Shown: piece by piece, positions 47,621-64,000 of the stretch
Layout of the letters: every line of letters begins with the position of its first letter
Position numbering within the stretch: the stretch's first letter is position 1
Assembly (NCBI GenBank): GCA_904063045.1
Contig: CAJFCJ010000007.1
Span: 3,107,404 to 3,171,403, forward strand
Reading direction: 5' to 3'
Length of the DNA: 64,000 bases
Source: Dimorphilus gyrociliatus
Lineage: Eukaryota; Animalia; Annelida
The notes under the pieces: model-generated
What the model was told of the DNA's origin: nothing
What the model saw: the letters and a program-made list of their open reading frames with translations, nothing else
Databases searched by the model: none
Translations under genes and position numbers: made by a program

Positions 47621-50338
47621 CATGTATATTTATATATTAAATAATGAATGAAGTGAAAAATTGATCATCTGACCTCTTCGTAAGAAATGTTGGAGTCGTC
47701 ATCTAGCAAAGCAACATCATCTAAATAAGATGAATGTTTAATTAACAAGACGCATAATTCATGTCTTGTAATTGAACCAGCGAGAATAAAACAGTTGTTA
47801 TTACCATTATTGCTAGTTTCAATAACTGGAAATACTCCGTGATTTGTCTCACGTAATATTTTCATCCAAGATAAAACATTATCTCCCTTACAAATACAAA
47901 TGGCTGGTTTGGACATAATTTCTTCAATTCGTGGCTCAACTAATCTACTAGACGGCGGATCTTCGTCCAAAAATGGTATACATTTTAGCTCCAAAATTGC
48001 GTGATATAGAGAGTGAGTTAATAAATTTCCAGTGCTTCTCGCCGTTATTACAGCGAACATAATTGGTAATAACATTGTGACATCATTAGTTATTTCAAGC
48101 ATGATAACAGTAAGAGAGACAGTCAATCTAGATACTCCAGCAAAAAATGCTGCCGCTCCAATCAAACTCCATGCACCTGCATCAACCCAATCTGTATGAC
48201 TGTTTCCTACAATTAAACCCAAGACGATTCCTGTTAAACGTCCTAATAGTCCTCCAATAAATAGCATTGGAACAACGAGACCGCTAGATACAGAGCTTCC
48301 AGCTGTCCAAGTTGCAAAAAAGAAATATAAAGGTAGCCATAAAAGAAGAGAAGTGCCAGAAATCTCTTCAGCAGATCTTCTAGTAAAGAGACGTTTTATA
48401 TTATCTTCACCAGGACCCCATAAGATAGTACTAACTGTAAACAAATGGATGGTGAAATGGCCGTAACAAAAAAAAACATAAATAAATAAATTAAAGGAAA
48501 TTCTTACTATCACTGTAGCTATTTGTCTGATTGTGACACACGGACATGGCATTCTTAGCAGATTCATCACGAGTACTTTCGTTGCCGCAAAAAGATGCGT
48601 AACCTTCTTTGCAGTCTATTTTCGTGCAAGGTATCCTTAATGGTATAAAAGTACTTGCCGTTGTAATAATAAGCTGAATTGATATAAAACTTTTATGTAA
48701 TTGAAATAGTACAAATATAGTAATCCCTTTTCATTACCAATATAAATAATGGTTCCACTACATCAAATAGAATTTGAATAAGCCGAGGTTTCAGATTATT
48801 ACGTATACAAATTCTCAATCTACGTATTTTTAAATTAACAAAAGTAAAAAATGCTCCAAGTATACCGCAAATGCACCCTAAAAGTATTGCTGGTAAAAAA
48901 GCTATCACGTTCATTGATACTTTGGTGGAGACCTATTGAATTAATTTTAATTTAGTTAATAGTAAACATGATGATGTTTTAAGCAAGTGTTACTTCAAAT
49001 AGAATATCATCACGCGATTTAAATTGTCCAAAACTGCCTACATAATTAAACCTTTTAAAAGCGGAGTCAAGAAGATCAGTTGTAAAAGTTGCTAACATAG
49101 AGCAAAAGAATATCTGCCACATTAAAGACATTGACCAAAATGACGAAACTTCTTCTAACGAAAAGAGTAGTCCTCCAATAGGGGCTCTAAATGCTGTTGC
49201 AACACCGGCAGCTGCCCCTGCACTTATAAAATTCCGCCTATTGTACAAAACAAGCTATTTATGTTAACAAACAATTCTCATTAACTAACTTATCTTCAGA
49301 ATTTCGGAATCTTTTGAAAAACGGCAAATTTAATCGCAAAGTTCTTGTTTTCATTTGACTGATACCTGCTCCGATTAGTGCTCTGGAAAAGATATAATGG
49401 TATAGTAATTAGTTCCCAGTTGTAGTTCTATTATTAGAAGCTACCCAAGATGAATCATAGGTCCTTCAGGTCCAACTGGTAAGCCGCTTGCAACAGCAAA
49501 GCAACATGAAAGAAATTTAACAATTCCTGTTCTCAGATTGAAAATGTGACGCAATTGGGTTCCATTTAAGAAGCCTATTAATTCTGGCATACCAGAACCG
49601 GCAGCACTTGGTCGCCACTAAAAGATATAACGCTGAACTTTTTCTTGATATTAAGTTAATATATATTACACTTACTAAAATTAAAGACGAAGATAATAAT
49701 ACTAACAGTGCTCCAATACCAAATAATGTTAGATAGGCTAATCCGAAGTTTCCTTCCTAATAACGAAGTTAAAAAAGAATAAATAGGAGAAATTTAAAAG
49801 CAATAATAAACATTTACTTGAATGTATTTTCCAGCGGTGTGCCACTTGATGTAAGACAATACATCAATCAATTGATGAAGAAAGAACCCGCATATACCAA
49901 CACAAATTCCAATTAAAGCTGAAATCAACCATCTGTCTATTTCATATTTCCTGGAAATAGTAAAATAATTATTGATAAATGGCAGAGAACTTTTAATTCA
50001 GAATAAATACTTGAAATAAGATTGGGCCCAGGACCGATAAACTGAGTTGTCTGGAGGTAAATAATCAAAACTGTCGAAGGAAGCTAATTTCTGCTTCTCT
50101 TGAGGGGTGTACGAATGACTTGTATTAACACTCTCGATCTCTCTTCCCTGTTTAAGAGACAAACGAGAGAAAGATTATTAGCTATATTCTCAACTCAAAG
50201 ATTAATCTTTTGTTTGTTCACCTTATCGAAGAACCCTCGACAGCATCCTTTAGAATTCTCTTGATTCAAGAGAGCACTCTCATCAAACCATTCCAAGCCA
50301 CTAGTATCATGTTTTGGCGTTGAATTTAAAATACCCAT
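47171..50338 (-). CDS. CLC-family Cl-/H+ exchanger (CLC-6/7-related) with two CBS domains, intact copy
   Basis: GSGMPE, GPEGPMIHLG, AFRAPIGGLLFSLEEVSSFW, SGLVVP, HSLYH, CBS1 and CBS2; spliced from ATG 50338. Confidence 0.93.
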
Positions 50339-50880
50339 TTATCGCTCAATTAATGTTAAAAATTTATGTAAACCGCACAAAAAAATCATAAGAAAATTAT
50401 CTCAATTGCAATAGAAAACATCCCTCCACTTAATATTTAGTAATTTTTCATAAATAAGGGCTCAATAATAAAGAATTCAATAATTTCTTTCCGAACAATT
50501 TTATCGATAATAATTCTAACAATGGAACTCTCGTTGTGATGTCTCGAAAAAAAAATAAACTTATGTCTTATGATCTGATGAAGCAATAAACTATAAAAGA
50601 CAAAAGAAATGCGAGCAGATACTGTAATAAGAATACATTCAAGTTGTGATTAGTCATATTTAGAAATATTTCGTCATGATTATTAAAATAAAAAGAATTC
50701 GAAAACGTATAAATACATTTAGATAAATTAATGTAAAACAAATACGAAAGCTCACACTTAGAGTAACTTTTACATGACTATTTTCATATTTTCTTAAAAA
50801 AAACAAATTATCTTTTATGGTTAAATAATTTCAGGCAAAAAATGGTTAAGAGTGAAAGAGAAAAACAGTCATATTTGGTA

Positions 50881-52540
50881 TTAAAAACATATCTCTCGAG
50901 CTTCGGAAGTTTGCTGCTCAACTGGACAATATGGACATTTCACCCTTGAAAATAATAAAAATATTGTTATTAATAATCATTAATCAACATATTATTAACA
51001 ATAAAAATATAAATTTATTACTTATTGACTGTAGCTAATTTAAGCAGAGCGTCGCGAGAAATAACGTGACCACAAATCAATCTAAGTGGAGGATTTGCTT
51101 CGCTTGTCTGTTGTTTTAAAATAGGGCAGGCAAAAATCGAATGATAGCGATTTTCATTTGGTAATTCTATTTCAACTGGCAATTCATCCTTATTACTCCA
51201 GACGTCGTTACATTTTCTTTGGTGCATGATGTTTTTAATATCCAATAGAGGCGGTAGGGCTCTACAGCCCGCGTTTATTCTATAGAAAAAAACAGATTAT
51301 GAAAAATTCAAGTACATTCTTCAGCTTTTCACTTACACTACTGATAAAGGACTCTCAACGCTTAGACCGTTCAAGTAGCAAGCCTCTTTTAATAATAAAA
51401 TTTCAGCGTCTCTCCAGAGTTGAGCGTCTAGGAGATGGCTGTAAGGAGAATTCTCCAATCCCTTATTTACATACATTAAACATCCTATCAGGGTCTGAAA
51501 TTCTATTCAACAAGAAAACAAAGAAAAATCAATTAGTAGATTAGGATAATAGCCTCAATAATATCATACAAACCAGAAGTATGTTCAACGGCGAATTTAG
51601 ACAAGTGCTTTGTTGCGTAGGACAAACATTCAGTCAATTGCTTCTTCTTTACTAACTTAATAAATTGGAGTTTGTGTAGCGTAAATTCTAAATGACTATT
51701 TGTATTTTGAAAGCTATTTTTACAACTCTCGGCCCATCTGATATAAGGATATTTTATTACTAGTTTTTTATAATAAGATACTAAAGGATAATTGAAAAAT
51801 TAAACAAAATTATACTCACTCAATAGCCAATTCTAGATGATGGTTTTTTAACTCTTCTAATATACAATGCAACTTTAAGAACAATTCATGGTTTTCGTCA
51901 GTAAAGAGCATTCCAGATTCTCTTGCTAGTATATCGGTAATATCAATACGTCCTTCTCTTATCAAATGCTCAGCAATTGATTTATTTAATAAGTCATTGC
52001 GACATTCAAAAGACGGATCGGTAATTATAGCTTCAAAATCAGATGTAAAATTCTGTAAAATGATTATTATAAAGATTTTTGATATTATAGTTCAGTATTT
52101 AAATATTTTATATATAATATCGTTAACGATAAATAACAGCTAAGTTCGTCTTATTCATTATATATTATTTTTAAGTGTAAGCGTACCCTATCGATTGCTT
52201 TGCCAACTTTTGAGACTTGATTATGAAGATCTTTATGATTGTTACTTATTCTTGATAAGACGTTTCTCGTAATAGAATTACATGCTAAAAAGAGCTTCTC
52301 TCCCTCTTGAAGATCTCCCCCTAAAAGAAAAACACATACCACCACCTTATTAGCAAAGCTAAAAACAACCACAAAAAACCGTATAAAGCTTTAAATTTAC
52401 TAACCATTTTCAATTTTTTTTTTGAGTTCTGCAAAAGAATTAATAACATCATCTATTTCTTTTGCAGATTCTTCTTTCATAACTGCAAATTTTGATAACA
52501 CTTTATCAATTTCTTTCTGAACAGCATTACAATTCGCCAT
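50881..52540 (-). CDS. RMND5A: RMND5/GID2, CTLH E3 ligase RING subunit
   Basis: ELPVEIEL...YHSIFACPILKQQTSEANPPLRLICGHVISRDAL and the final exon KCPYCP; N-terminus MANCNAVQKEIDKVLSKF. Confidence 0.92.
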
Positions 52541-52687
52541 TATTGTTTATCGTTTGGAGACCAGATGTACGAAAAGAACCACAAGAAAACCAACGCCATC
52601 TGGATTGTTTCATCACAATGTGAAAACATTGAGTAAAGGCTAAAGTGTCCTTTTTTCACGCTGAAATAACTGTTAATTGCTGTTAAA

Positions 52688-53784
52688 ATGAGCGGTATGA
52701 CCAATTATCATCTAACATTAAATATAAAGACTCTTAATTGAAAATAATATGCTCTAAGATGGTATTATATTAATGTTTTTATAGAAACTTCGGAAAATGT
52801 GGAATCTAGATCGATTACCCTAACGGACTTTCAGAGAGCAAAAATTGAAAGAAATCGACAAAGGGCCGTCTTACTTAGGGAATCCAGATTGGCAAGGAGA
52901 CAATGGGACGCTATTAAGTATTAAAAATAATAATTTTGCTCAGAATCTGTACTTATCCAGCCCTATTATAGGAAAGAAGGTGCAACAGTGAAGAGAACAC
53001 TGGACAGTGGTGCCGGTTTTCTCATTGAAGACGAAGATGAACAAAAACCTTCTGCCAAATTAAAAATAGTCGAAGAAGTAGCTGGTAGATTGAAAGCCGC
53101 TGACCAACCTGGTCTTTACTGCGACGACTGTGGTAAAGAGTTTGTTGACTCCTACCTTTATAAAACTTATAATGCAGATGTCTGTGATCAATGCAGGTTA
53201 TTTTTAATCTTTAATGTCTTTAATTTAGAAATAATCTATTATTAATACAAAATTATAAACAATTACAATACACTTAAAAGGGATACGGAGGAGAAACATC
53301 GTCTTATTACAAGGACAGACGCCAAGAATAGATACTTGTTAAACGATGCTGATATAGATAAACGCGAACCAAAATTAAAGTTTACTTTAAAGAAAAATCC
53401 ACACAATAAACGATGGGGTGAAATGAAACTATATTTAGAGATACAAATTGCCGAAAGAGCATTTGAAGTTTGGGGAAGTGAAGAGGCTATTGAGGAAGAA
53501 AAAGAGAAAAGACTTCAAAAGAAGGAAGATGCAAAGAAAAAGAAATTTGATAAAAAATTAACAGGTATTATTCCCGCTATATTTAGTCATACTATATCAT
53601 ACTATTAGTTTTCATTTAATTTCATTTAACAGAGTTAAAAAAGGCAGCAAGAAGTAGTCTCTATAGAAAAATTGATACAACTCATCAACATGAATTTGGT
53701 GAAGAAGTCTATAACGAAGAAACCGATGAATATACGAAATCTTGTAAATCATGTTCCCATAAACTTACTTACGAAAAGATGTAA
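52688..53784 (+). CDS. XPA: DNA repair protein XPA
   Basis: [21 protein letters not shown]4 zinc finger CDDC...[26 protein letters not shown]-terminal YEKM*. Confidence 0.95.
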
Positions 53785-53862
53785 ATTAAAAAAACAAAAA
53801 TAACGTAATATATATATTTTTAACTAAATAAAATAAAGATATATATTTTTTTTTTAAAAAAA

Positions 53863-55164
53863 ATGATATTATTAAGAAATTTTCTAATTATTAGTAATTT
53901 TCCAATTTTAGGTTATTTCTTCTATTTAAAGCATAAAATTGTAAAGGAAGACTATTTAAAGAAGTTCTGTACTAGTTATTATAGTAATTTATCGTATGAA
54001 CCTTACCTTGAAACGGATTGTTTGAAAATTAATAGTTGTTTTAGACAGTTTAACACTAAAGTTGATAGTACTCTTAAAAACGAATGCTTACTTTTAATTT
54101 CTAATCGAAAGACGAAAGAATGCGAAGCTACTTCGTCAGTTTGTCTAGGATCCATTCTAAATTCATCTAGTTTAAATATAGCTCTACCGGATGAGAGCAA
54201 AAATCCTTGTTTCGTTAAACGATTACAAGATGTTGGGGAGGAAATTCGCCAAGATATCCAATTCAGGGGACTGTTAAATGCTGACTTTTTATGGCCCTTT
54301 AGTTTAGAAAATGGTGCAAAGTACTGTTTAAAAATTATTGGTTGGAGAACATTTACAGAAGCTTTTGGAGAATGTATGGCTAATGGACTCCGATTACTTC
54401 GATTAAGCATAGGTGATCATCAAGATGAAAGTGATAGTTTGGAAATAATAGAATACCTTTCGAAATCGTTCGATTTAGATCACAATACTTTCATTTGGTC
54501 AGAAACGGATCAAGATTACACGTTTAGGGATACACTAAATCCCCAATGGAGGTCTCCACAAACGGATAATCAATATACAAATGATACAGTAAGATAAGTA
54601 GATTGAACAATAGTAAGATTACATAAAATAATCTTTCAATCATTGATGTGCGATTTAAAGAGAGTTAGGATTGATTACGAAGGCTGTCTGACTGTTAGAA
54701 TAAGACCCGGATCGATTCTTTGGAGATATGTGGATTGTCAACGAAGTATGTTGACAATCTGCATAAAATCTATAGATGGCAACTGGGGTAAATGGGGTAG
54801 CTGGATAAATTCAAAAACGACAGCCTTACAAAACCGTCATAGAATATGTATTAATCCATCAAAGAGAATACGACGAGAATCCTCTTATCAAATCAAAAAA
54901 TCTCAACAGGCTAAAATAATAGTAATAATATTATCTATCTGCCTTTGTGCGGTTTTATCTCTTACCGGTATTATTCTGCAATGGTTCTACAGCTGCTTAA
55001 AAAATGAACAGATGAAATACGAATTAATGCAGGCAAAGGTTGATCAGAAATTATGTAAATTAAAATGGAGAAAACAAAACTCGGCAATGTTAGAGTATTG
55101 GCAATCGTTACCAACTGAAAATTTAAATTCATCTATTGATTTAGAAGATTCTGCTATTCTATAA
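53863..55164 (+). CDS. Type I membrane protein with C-type lectin-like domain, TSP1-like WxxWxxW start and TM
   Basis: YCLKIIGWRTFTEAFGEC...FIWSE...GCLTV...WRYVDC...TICIKSIDGNWGKWGSW; hydrophobic IIVIILSICLCAVLSLTGIIL; intron at about 54589-54660. Confidence 0.65.
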
Positions 55165-55264
55165 ATTTAATAACAAATTTATTATGAAGATCCTCTTTAT
55201 GGTGTAAGTTGCTTTTTGCACACTCATCCCTCACAAGGAGGGAGCAGGTTGAGGGGGTTTTTTA

Positions 55265-56228
55265 TTAGTGTATTAATTCGTGGTGTAACTTTCCACAGAT
55301 AGTGCATTTCCTCGACAGGCATTTCTCCTTCTTGTGACCTGATTGCAAACAATTGAAACATAAATTTGATTCAATTATAAAATTCAACTTTTCCGATCTA
55401 GAAAGACTTTTAAATTTATTACAGTCGCTCAGAGAATGCTTAGAAGATTTGTGAAGACAGCAACTATAGGTTTTCCAACTTTTCTTTATCATTTTTTCAT
55501 TATTCCCTATCATTTCAGAGTCATTGCTTTGCAGACTATTTCCTCTCAATTCCGATACTTTATAATTATAGGCGTACCTTTCAACAAAATGTATGAGATT
55601 TAAAAAGTCTTTCTGGTCTTCTTTCCTTTCATTCCATTCGTTTCTCATTTCATTGCTGAACTTTGAAAGAGCCACGCATACTATATACGAGTAATCTGTC
55701 AACTGTTTATCCTTAACCGAAGGATTAAGATAAAATATCCGTGTAAGAGCAGAAGCAATATCGGCCGCCCTATCACTATTACCCTCAAGAATTGGTGGCT
55801 GAGTGTAAAGTTTTTCAAGGGCAAATATGTTAGAAGATTTTGCAGCTAAACTATCGTATCTGCTATCCAGAAGCACTATTGCAAAATCAAATGGCTCTTT
55901 CGTTTCAATATCATAGACAATTTCTATTAGTTTTCTAGCTTGGCCTTTTGTCCACTTCAACAAGAGTTGAAATTTATCCATTCCTTTTACGTTATGACTG
56001 AATAGAATATTCCTTATTGTTGTTCTAAACGCGTAATAACTAATGTTATAGCCATCGAATTTCTGATTTTCCTCTGGAAACCATATCTTTGAATTTATCC
56101 AAGCTGCATATTCGTTTATTGCCGTGATCTGGTGAGAATATACTTTACTTGTTCTTTTTAAAGTTATTAAGGGTTTAAAGCATATTTTGCAGATGATGTG
56201 ATTAATTACTTACCTCTAAGCCATTCAT
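55265..56228 (-). CDS. Intact spliced Gag-only gene derived from a BEL/Pao LTR retrotransposon (292 aa)
   Basis: Exon 1 ATG AAT GGC TTA GAG (56228-56214), 85-nt GTAAGT...CACCAG intron, exon 2 56128-55265 fully open. Capsid-like KFDG..SYYAFRT..DKFQLLLKWTKGQARKLIE; zinc knuckles CxxH-x4-H-x4-C, CxxC-x4-H-x4-C, CxxC-x3-H-x4-H; TAA TAA. Confidence 0.8.
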
Positions 56229-56921
56229 TATGAAAGTTTTTACCAGATTCTTTCACAATTCCTTATATTATTCAAAATAGATAAATAAAAACTTTCTACC
56301 GGAGACTTGTTAGACACAAAAAAACCAGTGATATTTGGGTAACGGTATCCTAGAATGGTATATAGGCCCTGATTGGTCATTTTTATTGGCATTGCGTCAT
56401 ATTCATCTCAAAACTTTGAAAATTAAGTAACGGTGAAATATTTGAATCGAAAACGAGACAATATTGCGTAGTTACATTTTTTTTATATCTTCAATTAATG
56501 TTTACTAATCAGAGGACATAGAAAATAGTTCAATTACTTTAGGAAAATTGGTTCATGGTTCATTTAAAGTATGCCTGGTATTAAGAGAAATAATTTTATA
56601 GAGGAATTTATCTGCATCTATGAAAGAAATGCAAATCATTATTTTAGAGATCAACCTTGGGCTAATTGCCGACGAGCTAATTGTACCCGCTGAATGCAAT
56701 ACGTAAAGATGAAAGCCTGAAGAGGTGTCTAACGAAAAATTGCCATAAAGGGCCATTATTAGTTTCTAATTTTAGAAACTTGCACGAAAAAAATAATGGA
56801 AAACATCTTCGTAAAAGCGTAATACTTTAGTTCTTTCTTTTAATTTAAATTTATCTTTAATAAAATAATTACATTATTTTGTAAAATTCATAAATAATTG
56901 GCTTTCAAGAAGATTTCGCAG

Positions 56922-59900
56922 TTACTTGTGGAGACTTTGAAGAAATTTATCCAATTCATATTCTTCGTATTGTTCCTCATCCCACAGTTCCTCTAGGTTC
57001 TCCATTACGCTTTTTGCTCCAGAGATTTGAGAAAGTTTCTTCCTTGGTGACTGTGCTTTTTCAACCGTAAACAAATCCAACAATTGATCTGTAGCCATTG
57101 ATGACAAGTTAGCATTATCGGCTGAAACAATGCTTTGCGCCACAGCCAATTTAAATTTTTGCAATCCCATTATCTTTTCTTCCAAAGTTCCTTTTGTTAT
57201 CAGTCTATAAACGTTTACTACCCTTTTCTGACCTATACGATGAGCTCTATCCATAGCCTGGGCATCTCTTGATGGGTTCCAATCGTGTTCGACAAAGATA
57301 ATCGTATTTGCTCCGGTTAAATTTAAGCCTAGCCCTCCAACGTGAGTTGTCAAAAGTAGAATATCAATTGATGGATCTGTGTTGAAGCGGTGAACAATAT
57401 TGTGGCGATTTCCAGGAGGGATACTTCCATCGAGACGAAGGTAGGTGGCATTAGGAAGATGAGTTCTGTTTTGTTTAACACAATCATAAATACAAGAAAA
57501 TATATTAATAAGTATATATTACTTTAGTAAATCCTTCTCGACAATATCCAACATACTCTTTAATTGACAGAAAATCAGAGCCCTATTCTGACCAACAACT
57601 GGTACATCGCTAAGATTTCCTTGATTTACACCAATGTCGCTATCAACAAGCAACTGTTTCAAAGCAGCCAGTTTGGGAGCGTGTTGAATATCATTAATAT
57701 TACTTCCTTCTCGCTTCATCTTTAGCATCAATTCTTCATATTTTGGATGATTTTTGTTCAATACTAACGAAGGATGACTGCATACTTTTCTTAGATACTG
57801 TAGAGCCTGGAATATATGATTGCTGGCTTTCTTGGCTGACGACTCCTGACCAAAATGAGACACATCATTTTCAACAGTTTTTAATGCCTTTGACTTTGAA
57901 AAGTCTTCGTAAAGCTCTATTTGCAAGGAGCTTAAACAACAATACATATCTTGAACAATTTTCGGGGGTAAATCTGTTAATACATCAGTCTTCATTCTTC
58001 TTAAAATAAACGGTAAAACCTGTTTATGCAAAGCCTCCATTGCTAATGCGCCCGCCTCTTGTTCTTTTGATGAACTCTTTGAATCTTTAGAAGCTGAAAT
58101 AGGTTTACCATAGCGAAGTTGAAATTGTTTTTGTGTTCCCAAATAACCAGGCATAAGAAAATCAAAAAGAGACCATAGTTCCAAAACGCTATTTTGTATA
58201 GGGGTACCGGAAAGTATCAGCCTATGCAATGATATCAGCCTCTTCATAGCTTTCCATAATTTTGTCTTGCTATTCTTTATCACGTGACCTTCATCCAATA
58301 TACAATAATTCCATTTGATTTTTCTGAAAAATAGCATGCAATTTGTTATAAATAAAATATATTATCTATATATAAGTTACGATAAAGATATTTACTCGAA
58401 AAATTCAATATCATTTCTGACAACGTCATAAGATGAAACTACAACGTTATGCTTATCAATCTCCTTTTGCAATCTATTTTTAGTGAATACACATTATCAC
58501 AAAATATTTTAATTGATTACAAGCTTATATTACACTTACAAATTCCTCTCTGTAGGAGTTCCGGTATAGTGTAATGGATTTAAATATTTTGAATCTACAA
58601 ATTTCTCCATTTCAAAAACCCAATGTCCAGTTAACGTTGGGGGACAGATAATTAACGATAATAATGGCTCACAATCTGGACCAGGATCAGTCTGAAGTTA
58701 AAAATATAAAAAAATAACTAACACAAAGCAGGTTTTAAAATTTGTAGCCAACCTTATACTTCTCTGCTCTCATAAAATGATCTCCAGCGACTATGCATAA
58801 TGTTTGCAAAGTTTTACCCAAACCCATATCATCACAAAGAGCTCCATGTAGCTTATACTTATTTAAAAATGCTAACCAATTGATCCCATCTTGTTGATAC
58901 TTCCTAGGTTCTGCTTTAATAGGAACAGGAATGTCAAAGTAATCGAGTTTCGATCCATCAAGCAATTGCTCTATGAATTTCCTCTCCTCCTCTTTCCTCT
59001 GTATAAGCTCTGTTTTCATATCAGGAGGATTTGGAATACCCTTCTCCAAAGATATCATGCGTATCAGTTGACCAAAGCATTGATTGGCCATCATTCTAAT
59101 AGATTTATCTTGATCACTCATACAGCCTAAAACGGGAACAAAGAGTAGTATACTATAAGGTGCAACATTGAATCCGACCGTTTCGATTAAATCTATAAAA
59201 TAGTGAACAAATTAAAAATTTAATAGCTATAGATGAACATGTTATTTACAATGAAGGGATGTTATTGCTCCTTGCTTAGATCTGATATTCTCGGACGATA
59301 AAATAGGAGCAACTTTCTCCAAATAGTGTTGCATAGTAGTAAGAATGTTGATATGAGTAAATTTTGCAAAGCATTTTGCTGCTGAATTGCGGACGGTCGT
59401 ATAAGGATGAAATAAGCAATTGGTAATAGAGTTTAAACGATTCAAAACCTGATATTAAAAAAATAAATTAGAAGGAACGAAAGTACATTGAAATATAATA
59501 TACTACCTCTTCATGTAAATCAGTATGTAGGTAAATAAGAATAGATTCAAGAAGCGTAAAAGAATTGATAAGACTTTTTGCTTCCGCGTTGTCCTCATTA
59601 GACTTTTCCAGATCTGATAAAAATTATAAAGTATTTAAACTATTTGAACTAAAGATGTCTTTTTAAAAATTAAATTACCGATTACTGTTTTCACTTTGTC
59701 AATAGCACCAAAAAGCAATGACCAGAGAGATTCGATATTAACCGGTAGCTGTGCTCCTTGATCGATTAATACTTGGGAGAGAGCTATTTGGGCACCCCTA
59801 CAAGAACTAGAGGATATATCCAGGTTATTATGATTTCCTATATCACATCCATTCGCCTTTTTTCCCATAGACTTCGGTGATTTTTGAAGATGTGTTTCAT

Positions 59901-62900
59901 TTAAAGCTAAAGCTAGTATTCCATAATATTTATCTAATTTTATATCACTTCCGTTATTTTCAGCCAAAAGTTCCTCTTTAATATTCTCACTGTCAATACA
60001 TATTAAATTACTTAAGTTTCTAATTATTTTCTCATTAGGCGATGATGTTCTAGTTGTAAATATTGATAACAATGCCGACAGACGGCTGGCAACTATTTTC
60101 TGTAAGTATTATTTTATTATTATTAAATATTTATTTATTTGTAGAAGATAATAGATGTCTTACTTGTAAATCAATATTAGTTTCTTTCCTTAGCGCCTCC
60201 ATTAGCGGCCTAATGACGGGATTAATTTGGTCCGGTATAGATTTCATACAAACTTTAGTACATGCCAACAGAGAACCAACTCTGTAAAATATTCAAAAGA
60301 TAAGATGATATGACGAAATAGAAAAGCAGTAAAAACACAAACCTTATATTGTAGGTCTTTTGTTCGTTTGCTGTAAAGGCTACAGTTGTTGAAAGTGAAT
60401 TTATCCGGGCTTCAATTTCATCCCGATTTCTTTTTATTTTAGATTTGATAGACGGATAGAAACTGGAGCAGAATTTCTCAGCCATTTCAATTGTCAGAAC
60501 GGGGCTACAACAAATAAAACTCATTATAATATTTGCTATACAGTAAAATGTTTATAAAAGCTTACGTTTTCTCAAATTCATTGACGTCAATTTTCATAGT
60601 TCTTAAAGAAAGTATTATATCCTTACATGATGCCTGCATTTTGGTAAATTGAACTGCAATTTCATCGTAATAAACAGGCTCGGTGAGGCATTTAAACACT
60701 AATTCATCTAGCTCCTTTGGAATGACTAAACTCTTTTTTGTAACAAAAATAATTATAACATTATTAAAGACTATTACTTGAAATAATTTAGAAAGTGTTC
60801 CTACTTCGTTATTATCACACCATTCGCCAAGAACCAATGCTGCAAACATTCTCTGCAGAGCAGATTTATTGTTCAGATGGAATATTATCATATTGGATAG
60901 GCATGTGGTTATGTCTTGACCATTTGGTACTTCAACGCAATTTACACTTAAGTTTCTGAAGACCTGACCAATTAATCTGTTATGTAATAATGAGAAATAA
61001 GACAACATTAGTGTTAAATGGTAAAGAAGTGACCTTGAAGCATATATTCTTGATCGATTAACAAATATATCTCGATTATCATTATTCTGAACTTGGGCTT
61101 CCCTTCCACCTAAATATAACTTGTCTTCGTTATCGGGTCTTTTCGATAATGTACCCTGTAAGTTAAATAGAAGCAATGTTAACAGAAAGTGAAAAACATA
61201 AATTTTAAAGTAGATCATATTACGTGTTTGGGTAATAGTAAGTTTTCGAGACTGAACGGTATGTAAACTGGTTGCATACCTAAACTCAACCATATACCTA
61301 AATGTTGGGATGTACTACAAAATATCTGATATGCAGGAGCAATATCTAGTATAGTTTGCCATATTTTTTCTGTTAGATTTAATATGTCAATTTCACTTTC
61401 TAAAAGAGATTGCTGATAAAGTAATCTCATAGTTGGTTCAAGTATCGGTAACAGCCAAGCCAAGATATGTTCCTTTTCAGCAGCTGATGTAAGTAAAATG
61501 TATAGAGTTTGGAAGCTCGATTTCCGAACAGAGGCGATATTATGCGAGAAAAATGGCCATAATCTTGGTATTAAATCCTTTAAAACATTCATATTCATTT
61601 TTCTGTTTGAGCGAGATTTAAATTTTTATCCGTTTTAATATATTATATTATAACTTACAAATTCTGATCACTGGATTCAGCAACTTTAGGCATAATTAAC
61701 GCTAACAGATTCATAAATGAATTTGTACTAGCTGTCAAATCGTCTAGAAGTACTAAAGAATCCCATAAACGTTCGACCAAAGACGGAATATAAGTATCTA
61801 ATTCCGAAGCTAAAGTATTGACAACTGGAATAAGACACATAGCCGCAACACTTCTAACATCATCTTCTTTATCACTCAAACAATTAAATACTGATTGAAA
61901 GACTATAGGTAGAGTAACTGATGTCATATCAGTTCTAACAGCCATTGTATATTTAATAGCTAATAAACCACCGTGCCTTACTTCCCATTGATCACTAATT
62001 AACATTTCTAGTAACAATTTTATACCAGTAGAAACAGTTTCCTCGGGTAAACTTTGCATAACTACACCCAAAGTTTGTGCAGCGCTCTCACGTACCGGAG
62101 CCACAACTTCATCAGATATAAAATCACCGAATCTATCCAAGACTAATAAACCTATTAAACGAACTGCAATATTCTCCAGATAGCTTTGATTGGCCAATTC
62201 CATCTGGAAATGTTATAAGTTTCTCAATAAACTTTAATTGTTAGGTATATTTTCTAATAAATACCGAATTTTTATATATTAAATTCGATTTTCCAGCACT
62301 AGAGGCATGATGCTTTAAAATATGCCTAAGGGCGACTGCACTACCGTGTCGTTTCTCCCAAGCACTATTAATTAGGTCATTCAACAACGTTTCACAAAAT
62401 TTCGATAACGGCCAATCTTCAGTCTAAGGTAGACATTGTTGTATAAGTTATTCTTATATAAATATGAAAGGATTTATAAACCTCAGTATCGAAACAAGCC
62501 GGACTGTTTGATCTAGAGTCCACACTGATGCTACTAGATCTCGATCTCTTGCCAGCTTTCGAGTCGTCATCATTGATTACATTCCCACCATGTGAGGTTT
62601 GCCTAGTGAAAGCTTTGACTTTTCTCTTCAACTTGTTCTTTTCTCTAACAGACAATGACTGATTACTCTTGAAGATAGAAGCTAGATTGTCTGATGACTA
62701 TTGTAAATCATGGTGAAAATATTATTAAATAAATATTACGTAATCTATTAAGTTAATACTATTACATTTATAGATTGCGGAGTAGAAGGCTGCTTTACTA
62801 AATCATCATCCTCTACTAAATCCGTGAGAAAATTTGAAACTGATGGTAGGCCTAACGACAAATTTTTATTCATCGCCTCTCTCTCTCTCTTAATAGCAGC

Positions 62901-63482
62901 TTCTTTACTTTCTCCTACAAGTAAGAATAGATTTATGTGTCTATCATAGATATGAAAAAAAAAGTTTTTTTAACCAGTATCATTATCAGCATCGTATTCA
63001 CATCCTTCTGATCCAACTAGAGTTTTCTGTTTCAGAACTAATGATATATTGAAATCTTTGAAGCGCAAAAAATTCTCTTGTAATTTTTCAAAGACAGCAT
63101 TAGATTCTGGAGAGCCTTCCGGATTAAAGCTCGGCACTTGAGAGACAACAGCCTCAACAGCTAAACCTGCGGCTATCCTTGTTTCCCAATTAGGTTTACC
63201 CAATATTTCATGTAACTAATAATGATTATAAATATTATGCTTTATCAAAATTAACGGGAAGAATCGGAGATTAACCTTAAATAAAATTATTTGTAAGTCT
63301 TCTGGATGATTTTTTATGACAGTTCCTATTTGTTCGGCAGCTGTTTTTCGAACAACCATTGTCGAACCAGTGTCCAACAAACAGAACAATCGATCCAACC
63401 TACTCATTGTTACACGGTAAGTGACTTTGTTGAAAAAAACTAAACCATAAAAAATGTATTTAATGATATACCTTGTAGACAT
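56922..63482 (-). CDS. BTAF1: TBP-associated SNF2 ATPase BTAF1/Mot1 (many exons)
   Basis: MSTR|LDRLFCLLDTGS, VAPVRESAAQTLG, WEVRHGGLL, DDMGLGKTLQ, ILDEGHVIKN, DQAMDRAHRIGQ-type motif VI (AQAMDRAHRIGQ), LWDEEQYEEYELDKFL. Confidence 0.97.
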
Positions 63483-64000
63483 CTTCTATCTTTTTTAACA
63501 TATCTTAACTAATGATGATCTTCTATAATGCAGTTACAATCATTGTGTAACTGTCACCTTTCGTATTTACAGTGAAATAGCGCTTTAGAAATAATATGAA
63601 TTTGCTTCTTTATTTTCTATGGAAGAATGAATTTTCTAAATTTTTATCTGGTAGAAAGCTGTATACTCTAATGTATCAGTCCACAGTAGGTCGATTTTCG
63701 GTTTGAATTAAACGCATGTAAAATGAAAAAGCCCCCTCTCAAAAGCTTAATCGTTTCACATCCGCTCATTTCCACCGCTCAATTTATAATGACGCCATCT
63801 TCACGTGAGCGAGCTCAAAACCTGGAAGATTGGCGCTGATTGGTTGATAAAAATAGACAAATCGAATTTAATTTATCTATCAAGTCGTTGCAGAGAATAA
63901 ATATGGCGCTAGTATAACAACATCTATAGGACATTTTGAAAAGTAAACTTACGTAGAATCAATTGACGTCATTATTCTATAAATTATAATAATTTGGAAT

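Follow-up and report, generated by a model that had tools for sequence, protein, structure and literature searches.

A spliced gag-only gene in Dimorphilus gyrociliatus

We analysed a stretch of 64,000 nucleotides from the annelid Dimorphilus gyrociliatus (assembly GCA_904063045.1, contig CAJFCJ010000007.1, forward-strand positions 3,107,404 to 3,171,403), hereafter the window, whose own positions are used throughout. On its minus strand, at 55265-56228, lies a gene that encodes the Gag protein of a BEL/Pao retrotransposon. It consists of a 5-codon ATG exon, an 85-nt intron and a 287-codon exon, which together give a 292-residue product if no second splice is made (Table 1). The gene stands between BTAF1 and XPA, where a first-pass annotation made from the sequence had placed it. 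That a BEL/Pao Gag is encoded here, gag-only, spliced and in a host context, is well supported. That it serves as a domesticated, Arc-like carrier of RNA is plausible, and is complicated by the public gene model of the locus, which contains a second intron; capsid formation and RNA packaging are activities that the predicted protein may have.

The first-pass annotation had read the short MNGLE exon, the GTAAGT donor, the phase-0 join and the length of 292 residues from the DNA alone, and the same junction is present in the public model, DgyrCDS6408, which opens with MNGLE followed by ITAINEY. The CAG acceptor at 56129 likewise stands. The extent of open frame upstream of the automatically listed open reading frame (ORF) had been put at 49 codons, which is too short: the frame is open for 76 codons 5' of that ORF's ATG, as far as 56209. 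At the local base composition, an open frame of 287 codons has a chance probability of ~2e-10. The 85 nt of intron 1 are close to the median intron of the species, 66 bp (PMC7854359). The start codon of MNGLE is the first ATG 3' of the TATATA at 56364-56359. The CCAAT box that had been noted at 56371-56376 is there, as CCAATC, and we found a second CCAAT beside it; from their sequence and position, the CCAAT and TATA boxes at 56359-56389 may act as the promoter. A 50-codon ATG ORF on the minus strand (56240-56392) covers the boxes 5' of the gag start and is probably absent from the gag transcript, since it begins upstream of the TATA. One candidate for homology within intron 1 or upstream of it was rejected: a tblastn extension with the relative P0016 reached 56173, and the BLASTP match starts at exon-2 residue 22 and the match to P0004, a gag-only ORF described below, at residue 15.

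The encoded protein is related to BEL/Pao Gag

In a Pfam search at E <= 1, DUF1759 was the only family that matched exon 2, with a score above its cut-off, and no Ty3-type Gag family was matched. We then considered the relatives of the protein in a collection of about 15 billion proteins with 1.84 billion representatives. A HMMER scan of the representatives returned 3193 relatives at E <= 1e-3, all of them distant: members are ~25-29% identical to the worm protein, the nearest non-self relative being ~27% identical and none exceeding ~29%. Long relatives (P0009, P0016, P0037 and P0054) carry Peptidase_A17 (the Pao peptidase), DUF5641, reverse transcriptase and integrase domains, and the family is therefore that of BEL/Pao Gag-Pol. 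The BEL/Pao capsid-like region proposed at first sight is upheld by both lines of evidence, and we conclude that the product of exon 2 is a BEL/Pao (Belpaoviridae) Gag made up of a capsid part and three zinc knuckles, the first of them a variant. A word-indexed protein search with exon 2 returned only DgyrCDS6408. The best-scoring relative, P0002 (4077 aa, Cordylochernes scorpioides), contains three Gag copies, at 129-383, 1345-1614 and 2570-2839, which suggests a gene model joining three elements, its low E-value arising from summed matches and not from closeness.

The relatives were matched from about residue 110-140 to about residue 400, with pol after the match, and the worm match ends at the last residue of the protein. 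Only 27 residues (5 + 22) precede the homologous part of worm Gag. The N-terminal domain of the relatives, called matrix-like in a preprint on belpaovirus capsids (10.64898/2026.03.22.711591), is missing. This loss had been overlooked in the first-pass annotation, as had the second intron of the public model at 55339-55577.

Predicted capsid fold and zinc knuckles

An AlphaFold2 model made with 60 relatives (mean predicted local distance difference test score 85.7) showed four helices over residues 31-109 and five over residues 118-198, followed by a disordered linker and the knuckles. The first-pass annotation had called for a structure comparison with Arc capsids, and this comparison supported a bilobed capsid fold of retroviral type. 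In a Foldseek search of the PDB, the nine best matches were all capsids of retroviral type, namely murine leukaemia virus capsid, PNMA2, Arc and dArc1, at match probabilities of 0.57-1.00. The statistics of these matches are modest (best E = 6.5e-3, TM-scores normalised by target length 0.31-0.52). Among viral models, the best structure matches were caulimovirid coat proteins and retroviral Gag. By sequence, the knuckles weakly matched the nucleocapsids of equine infectious anaemia virus and human immunodeficiency virus type 1 in the PDB; matches to heptad repeat 1 of coronavirus spike in the same search were discarded as spurious, being due to coiled coil.

Conservation was scored in an alignment of 61 sequences, in which the worm protein retains 33 of the 52 columns conserved at >= 60%. 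Of the three knuckles that had been recognised in the sequence, the second and third keep all their ligands and the first is a variant. Two features had gone unremarked: knuckle 1 has no second Cys, and the public model splices out knuckles 1 and 2. Knuckle 1 keeps the first Cys, the His and the last Cys; its second ligand position, Cys in 57 of the 61 sequences, is occupied by Lys. Judging from the sequence, an alternative C-x2-H-x4-H-x4-C arrangement could be formed with one more Cys, immediately ahead of the first ligand, and a His two residues past that ligand. In knuckles 2 and 3, all eight ligands are retained in columns that are invariant or nearly so (C257, C260, H265 and C270; C275, C278, H282 and H287).

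Belpaovirus capsid domains expressed alone form icosahedral particles that carry nucleic acid, without the nucleocapsid (bioRxiv 10.64898/2026.03.22.711591). Because those capsid domains alone form particles, self-assembly of worm Gag is, by analogy, a reasonable expectation.

Missing element parts and the position of the gag stop

No pol similarity was found in the whole window by tblastn with seven Gag-Pol relatives, which matched the gag region only, in keeping with the earlier statement that neither protease nor reverse transcriptase nor integrase follows the gene. The absence of a pair of long terminal repeats (LTRs) and of a target-site duplication was likewise confirmed for 48000-64000, that is within 8 kb of the gene, where no direct repeat of >= 25 nt was fit to be an LTR. 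Remnants of the Gag N-terminus or of a C-terminal tail were not found in the window. The host genome is compact, at ~70 Mb, with an unusually low transposon load of 4.87%; its published repeat tables list no Pao family, assign 0.23% to 'Other LTR' and give Dingle, which is Ty3/gypsy-like, as the dominant LTR family (PMC7854359).

The double stop that had been seen after HHELIH is present as TAA TAA. The first-pass annotation had taken the clean truncation after the knuckles as a sign of exaptation, which the relatives do not support. In two natural BEL/Pao-like relatives on Logan contigs, L002 (99-1286) and L003 (633-1517), gag also stops directly after the third knuckle, ending in HHYLLHL and HHTLLH, respectively. 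A separate ORF lies 90-265 nt downstream of gag in both, and that of L003 has weak similarity to aspartyl proteases, so that separate gag and pol frames occur among BEL/Pao-like elements. Since L002 and L003 end gag at the same motif, the position of the worm stop is no sign of exaptation: gag natively terminates there in a subset of BEL/Pao elements, and the stop is uninformative on this question.

The public gene model and its second intron

A public gene model of 226 residues, DgyrCDS6408 (CAD5117655.1), already covers the locus, on a 4.6-Mb scaffold of the same assembly. Our exon-2 translation (55268-56128, minus strand) is 100% identical to it over the common part. The model tracks exon 2 up to HFVE and a split Arg codon and then enters a second intron, beyond which a tail of 37 residues is read in another frame. 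Exact look-ups of the DgyrCDS6408 protein and of the 238-residue ATG ORF returned the genome record only or no match, with no transcript contig among the results, and a literature search for the gene identifier DgyrCDS6408 found no mention.

This genome was annotated with EvidenceModeler, in which PASA transcript assemblies counted ten times as much as ab initio predictions (PMC7854359). A 5-codon first exon and a frame-shifting intron resemble transcript-derived features more than ab initio choices. At 239 nt, intron 2 is more than three times as long as the species median, and short introns are removed more efficiently in D. gyrociliatus (PMC7854359). Substantial retention of intron 2 is therefore likely. 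The locus may yield both forms, with and without the RNA-binding part.

Table 1. Features of the gag locus, in window positions.
Feature	Position	Strand	Description
Putative core promoter	56359..56389	-	CCAAT 56389-56385, CCAATC 56376-56371, TATATA 56364-56359; read from sequence
Exon 1, coding part	56214..56228	-	ATG 56228-56226 and four codons (MNGLE); A at -3; equals residues 1-5 of DgyrCDS6408
Intron 1	56129..56213	-	85 nt, phase 0, GTAAGT...CAG; donor from 56213, acceptor AG 56130-56129; junction as in DgyrCDS6408
Exon 2, read unspliced	55265..56128	-	287 codons to HHELIH, then TAA; capsid and nucleocapsid Gag
DUF1759 match	55610..56056	-	Exon-2 residues 25-173; Pfam E = 2.9e-6, 27.8 bits, cut-off 25.4; profile positions 2-147 of 148
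Two-lobed helical capsid fold, predicted	55535..56038	-	AlphaFold2 model; N-lobe helices residues 31-109, C-lobe helices residues 118-198
Intron 2, public model only	55339..55577	-	239 nt, GTACGC...CAG; deletes linker and knuckles 1-2, frameshifts knuckle 3
Zinc knuckle 1, variant	55421..55462	-	Residues 223-236; from the alignment
Zinc knuckle 2	55319..55360	-	Residues 257-270, canonical C-x2-C-x4-H-x4-C; invariant or nearly invariant columns
Zinc knuckle 3	55268..55306	-	Residues 275-287, C-x2-C-x3-H-x4-H; last residues of the protein
Exon 3, public model	55224..55338	-	37-residue tail in another frame, read from 55337; TGA stop 55226-55224; agrees with annotated gene range
Double stop TAA TAA	55261..55267	-	TAA TAA 55267-55262, overlapped by AATAAA 55266-55261
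Second AATAAA signal	55178..55183	-	3' of both candidate stops

Co-opted gene or relic

The account we favour, with moderate confidence, is that of a single gag-only gene left by an old BEL/Pao insertion, co-opted by the host and kept in frame by selection. On this account, the two LTRs, the whole of pol and the matrix-like N-terminus of Gag would have disappeared from an old BEL/Pao (Belpaoviridae) insertion. The two-lobed capsid domain would remain, together with the three-knuckle nucleocapsid, up to the stop codon that gag had in the element itself. A host-side promoter with TATA and CCAAT boxes and a 5-codon first exon would splice into a site near the capsid start, and the frame would most likely have been kept by selection. 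The product is predicted to self-associate through its capsid lobes, with knuckles 2 and 3 binding nucleic acid. Through the second splice, the protein would be reduced to its capsid part followed by an unrelated tail, and forms with and without the RNA-binding part may coexist.

The argument for constraint is indirect and rests on an intact frame beside LTRs, pol and a matrix-like part that have vanished. A stop codon would arise from about 5.5% of the possible single substitutions in the frame. Assuming insertions and deletions at 5-20% of the substitution rate, an unconstrained frame of 861 nt keeps a 5% probability of survival only up to ~1.4-3.3% neutral divergence. The codon usage is host-like: GC content at third codon positions is 0.34 and the relative synonymous codon usage correlates with that of the pooled host ORFs at 0.61, both values lying inside the range of the window's host ORFs. 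Further signs of constraint are the eight ligands retained in knuckles 2 and 3 and the 33 of 52 conserved columns that are kept. Like co-opted gag genes, the locus has an intact, gag-only ORF in a host gene context. The annotation filter dropped predictions with transposon hits or >= 90% repeat masking (PMC7854359), and DgyrCDS6408 passed it, which, like the ~27% identity of the best non-self match, would fit a low copy number.

Several observations weigh against selection on this gene. No orthologue was found among proteins, none of which exceeded ~29% identity. The splice in DgyrCDS6408 removes the knuckles with a frameshift, and should most of the product be of this form, the nucleocapsid could be a relic. 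Knuckle 1 is without its canonical second Cys. The DUF1759 score is barely over threshold (27.8 vs 25.4 bits), and worm Gag sits on a long terminal branch of the Gag tree (2.37 vs a median of 1.06); both fit relaxed constraint and an unsampled lineage equally well. The predicted proteins hold no close paralogue of worm Gag, but transposon-like models had been stripped from this proteome and 0.23% of the genome is 'other LTR' sequence, so that related genomic copies may exist.

The same missing orthologues and close relatives, frame-shifting splice, non-canonical knuckle, long branch and marginal Pfam score, together with a stop that is merely the native one, are what a dead solo-gag relic would present. 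Such a relic would owe its transcription to a promoter that happens to be close by and its gene model to the annotation pipeline, and its open frame would reflect youth or luck. We regard this as possible but on the whole unlikely. At the indel rates assumed above, a frame of this length lasts, at the 5% level, only to the ~1.4-3.3% neutral divergence calculated, and yet the LTRs, pol and the matrix-like part are already gone. Host genes abut the locus, the codon usage is host-like, every ligand of knuckles 2 and 3 is retained, and the gene model is not repeat-masked.

A co-opted gene could also act through the annotated 226-residue form, with capsid lobes and a new tail as the functional product and the knuckle region an intronic stretch that has not yet decayed. 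The structure of DgyrCDS6408 itself speaks for this, as do the ten-fold weight given to transcript assemblies and exon and intron features that look transcript-derived; moreover, the belpaovirus capsid domains that assemble and carry nucleic acid do so without a nucleocapsid (bioRxiv 10.64898/2026.03.22.711591). We nevertheless consider this form doubtful as the sole product. Past the intron 2 donor, 104 codons remain open up to the gag stop, which has a chance probability of ~3e-4 from composition, and within them all the invariant ligands of knuckles 2 and 3 are kept. The splice also falls at residue 185, inside the last helix of the C-lobe (residues 175-198), and an intron of this length, more than three times the median, is likely to be retained to a substantial extent.

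Fv1 and the truncated Ty1 Gag p22 poison the particles of LTR elements. By analogy, the shortened Gag could be a restriction factor and no RNA carrier, one that co-assembles with the particles of active LTR elements and poisons them; the absent matrix-like N-terminus, the retained assembly lobes and the low transposon load of the host (4.87%) would suit this role, but we judge it improbable, since no BEL/Pao family is among the genome's listed repeats to provide an evident target, and co-assembly of a BEL/Pao capsid with the Ty3/gypsy-like Dingle, the dominant LTR family, is not expected.

A gag-only open reading frame as a possible companion

P0004 is a gag-only ORF of 558 residues at L004:4451-6127, found also on L005, L006 and L007 (Logan SRR23372216/228/229/231). 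It follows an acetyl-CoA carboxylase gene, 650 nt downstream, in an AT-rich metazoan host context, and neither LTRs nor pol were found on its four contigs. The contigs show no difference across the ORF or in the upstream flank; downstream of the ORF, two of them differ at 3 positions, which gives no polymorphism of use for a test of selection. The carboxylase fragment beside it matches vertebrate, annelid and mollusc proteins equally well, at 60-67% identity. A word-indexed protein search with P0004 returned only P0004 itself, and its DUF1759 score, 18.5 bits, is below the cut-off.

In the Gag tree, P0004 is the nearest neighbour of worm Gag, with a Shimodaira-Hasegawa-like approximate likelihood ratio test support of 94; both branches are long, the join was flagged as unsafe, and the pairing may be an artefact. 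The two proteins are 28% identical. Six residues are exclusive to them among the 61 aligned sequences, and P0004 has 19 rare residues in common with worm Gag, compared with 16 and 14 for other relatives. The second ligand of knuckle 1 is not Cys in either protein. P0004 differs from the worm gene in its 205-residue N-terminus, its 70-residue C-terminal tail, its neighbour gene and its lack of an intron. We treat P0004 as a lead, not as evidence of orthology. A shared origin of DgyrCDS6408 and P0004 in one old spiralian co-option of a BEL/Pao Gag, with the 239-nt intron switching between a capsid-plus-RNA-binding and a capsid-only product and with particles that carry RNA, would be the first animal capsid gene from BEL/Pao, but we think it very improbable.

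Comparison with known capsid genes

To our knowledge, every established case of a retrotransposon capsid gene captured by an animal (Arc, dArc1, PEG10, RTL and PNMA) goes back to Ty3/Gypsy, whereas the worm gene derives from BEL/Pao. These genes are its closest functional analogues, with which it shares a gag-only content, a host context, a promoter of its own, albeit a putative one in the worm, an intron and a bilobed capsid fold. The Arc-type genes have demonstrated orthology, selection, expression and capsids, whereas the worm gene is known here from its sequence and predicted fold. Compared with the Gag of BEL/Pao elements (Pao, BEL, Cer and Atlas-type), the worm protein has the same DUF1759 capsid region and two-lobed helical fold and the same three C-terminal Cys/His knuckles ending in C-x2-C-x3-HH-x-L-x-H, with a stop after the third knuckle as in some elements. 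It differs in having no matrix-like N-terminal domain, pol or LTRs, in its spliced 5' exon, in a knuckle 1 without the second Cys, and in an identity of only ~25-29%.

The first-pass annotation had named Ty3/Gypsy as the source of the known domesticated capsids, which is too narrow when all eukaryotes are considered. In a screen covering 2,011 eukaryotes, gag was reported to have been co-opted 14 times, with Ty3/Gypsy as the source in nine cases, Ty1/Copia in four and Bel-Pao in one; this last, Crtg14, is fungal, and none of the animal cases is Bel-Pao (PMC8321522). Crtg14 resembles the worm gene in its Bel-Pao source and as a gag-only host gene. Crtg14 is conserved across orders with evidence of synteny and selection, whereas the worm gene is from an animal and is known from one species only. 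A literature search on DUF1759 found no report of domestication.

If the gene is kept by selection, animals too have drawn on a third LTR superfamily, and this would be the first animal case from BEL/Pao. The worm, which is tractable and has a genome of 70 Mb, would then offer a three-knuckle capsid protein of compact size, and the alternative splice could be used to test the contribution of the RNA-binding part. If the locus is only a relic, it shows how cleanly a compacting genome trims an element to a single open frame.

Neighbouring genes

The window has a GC content of ~33% and is densely filled with host genes, among them those for methylmalonyl-CoA mutase, HSP90, syntrophin, a CLC channel and BTAF1. 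BTAF1 lies upstream of the gag gene on the same strand, ending at 56922, and an annotated model that contains XPA lies downstream on the opposite strand, ending at 54597. The earlier statement that the 100 bp beyond the gag stop run into a host gene needs correction. The plus-strand ORF concerned, 54643-55164, does end 100 nt from the gag stop; it has 173 codons with a WGKWGSW motif and a hydrophobic stretch, and it falls outside every annotated coding sequence. Neither of the two plus-strand ORFs adjoining the gag gene had a significant Pfam match, and 54643-55164 had none even at E <= 1. The annotated XPA model (52688-54597, plus strand) encodes 481 residues with XPA_N and XPA_C domains. Its last ORF, 53863-54597 (244 codons), gave no XPA match and only a chance-level match to iSTAND, and the model may fuse two genes.

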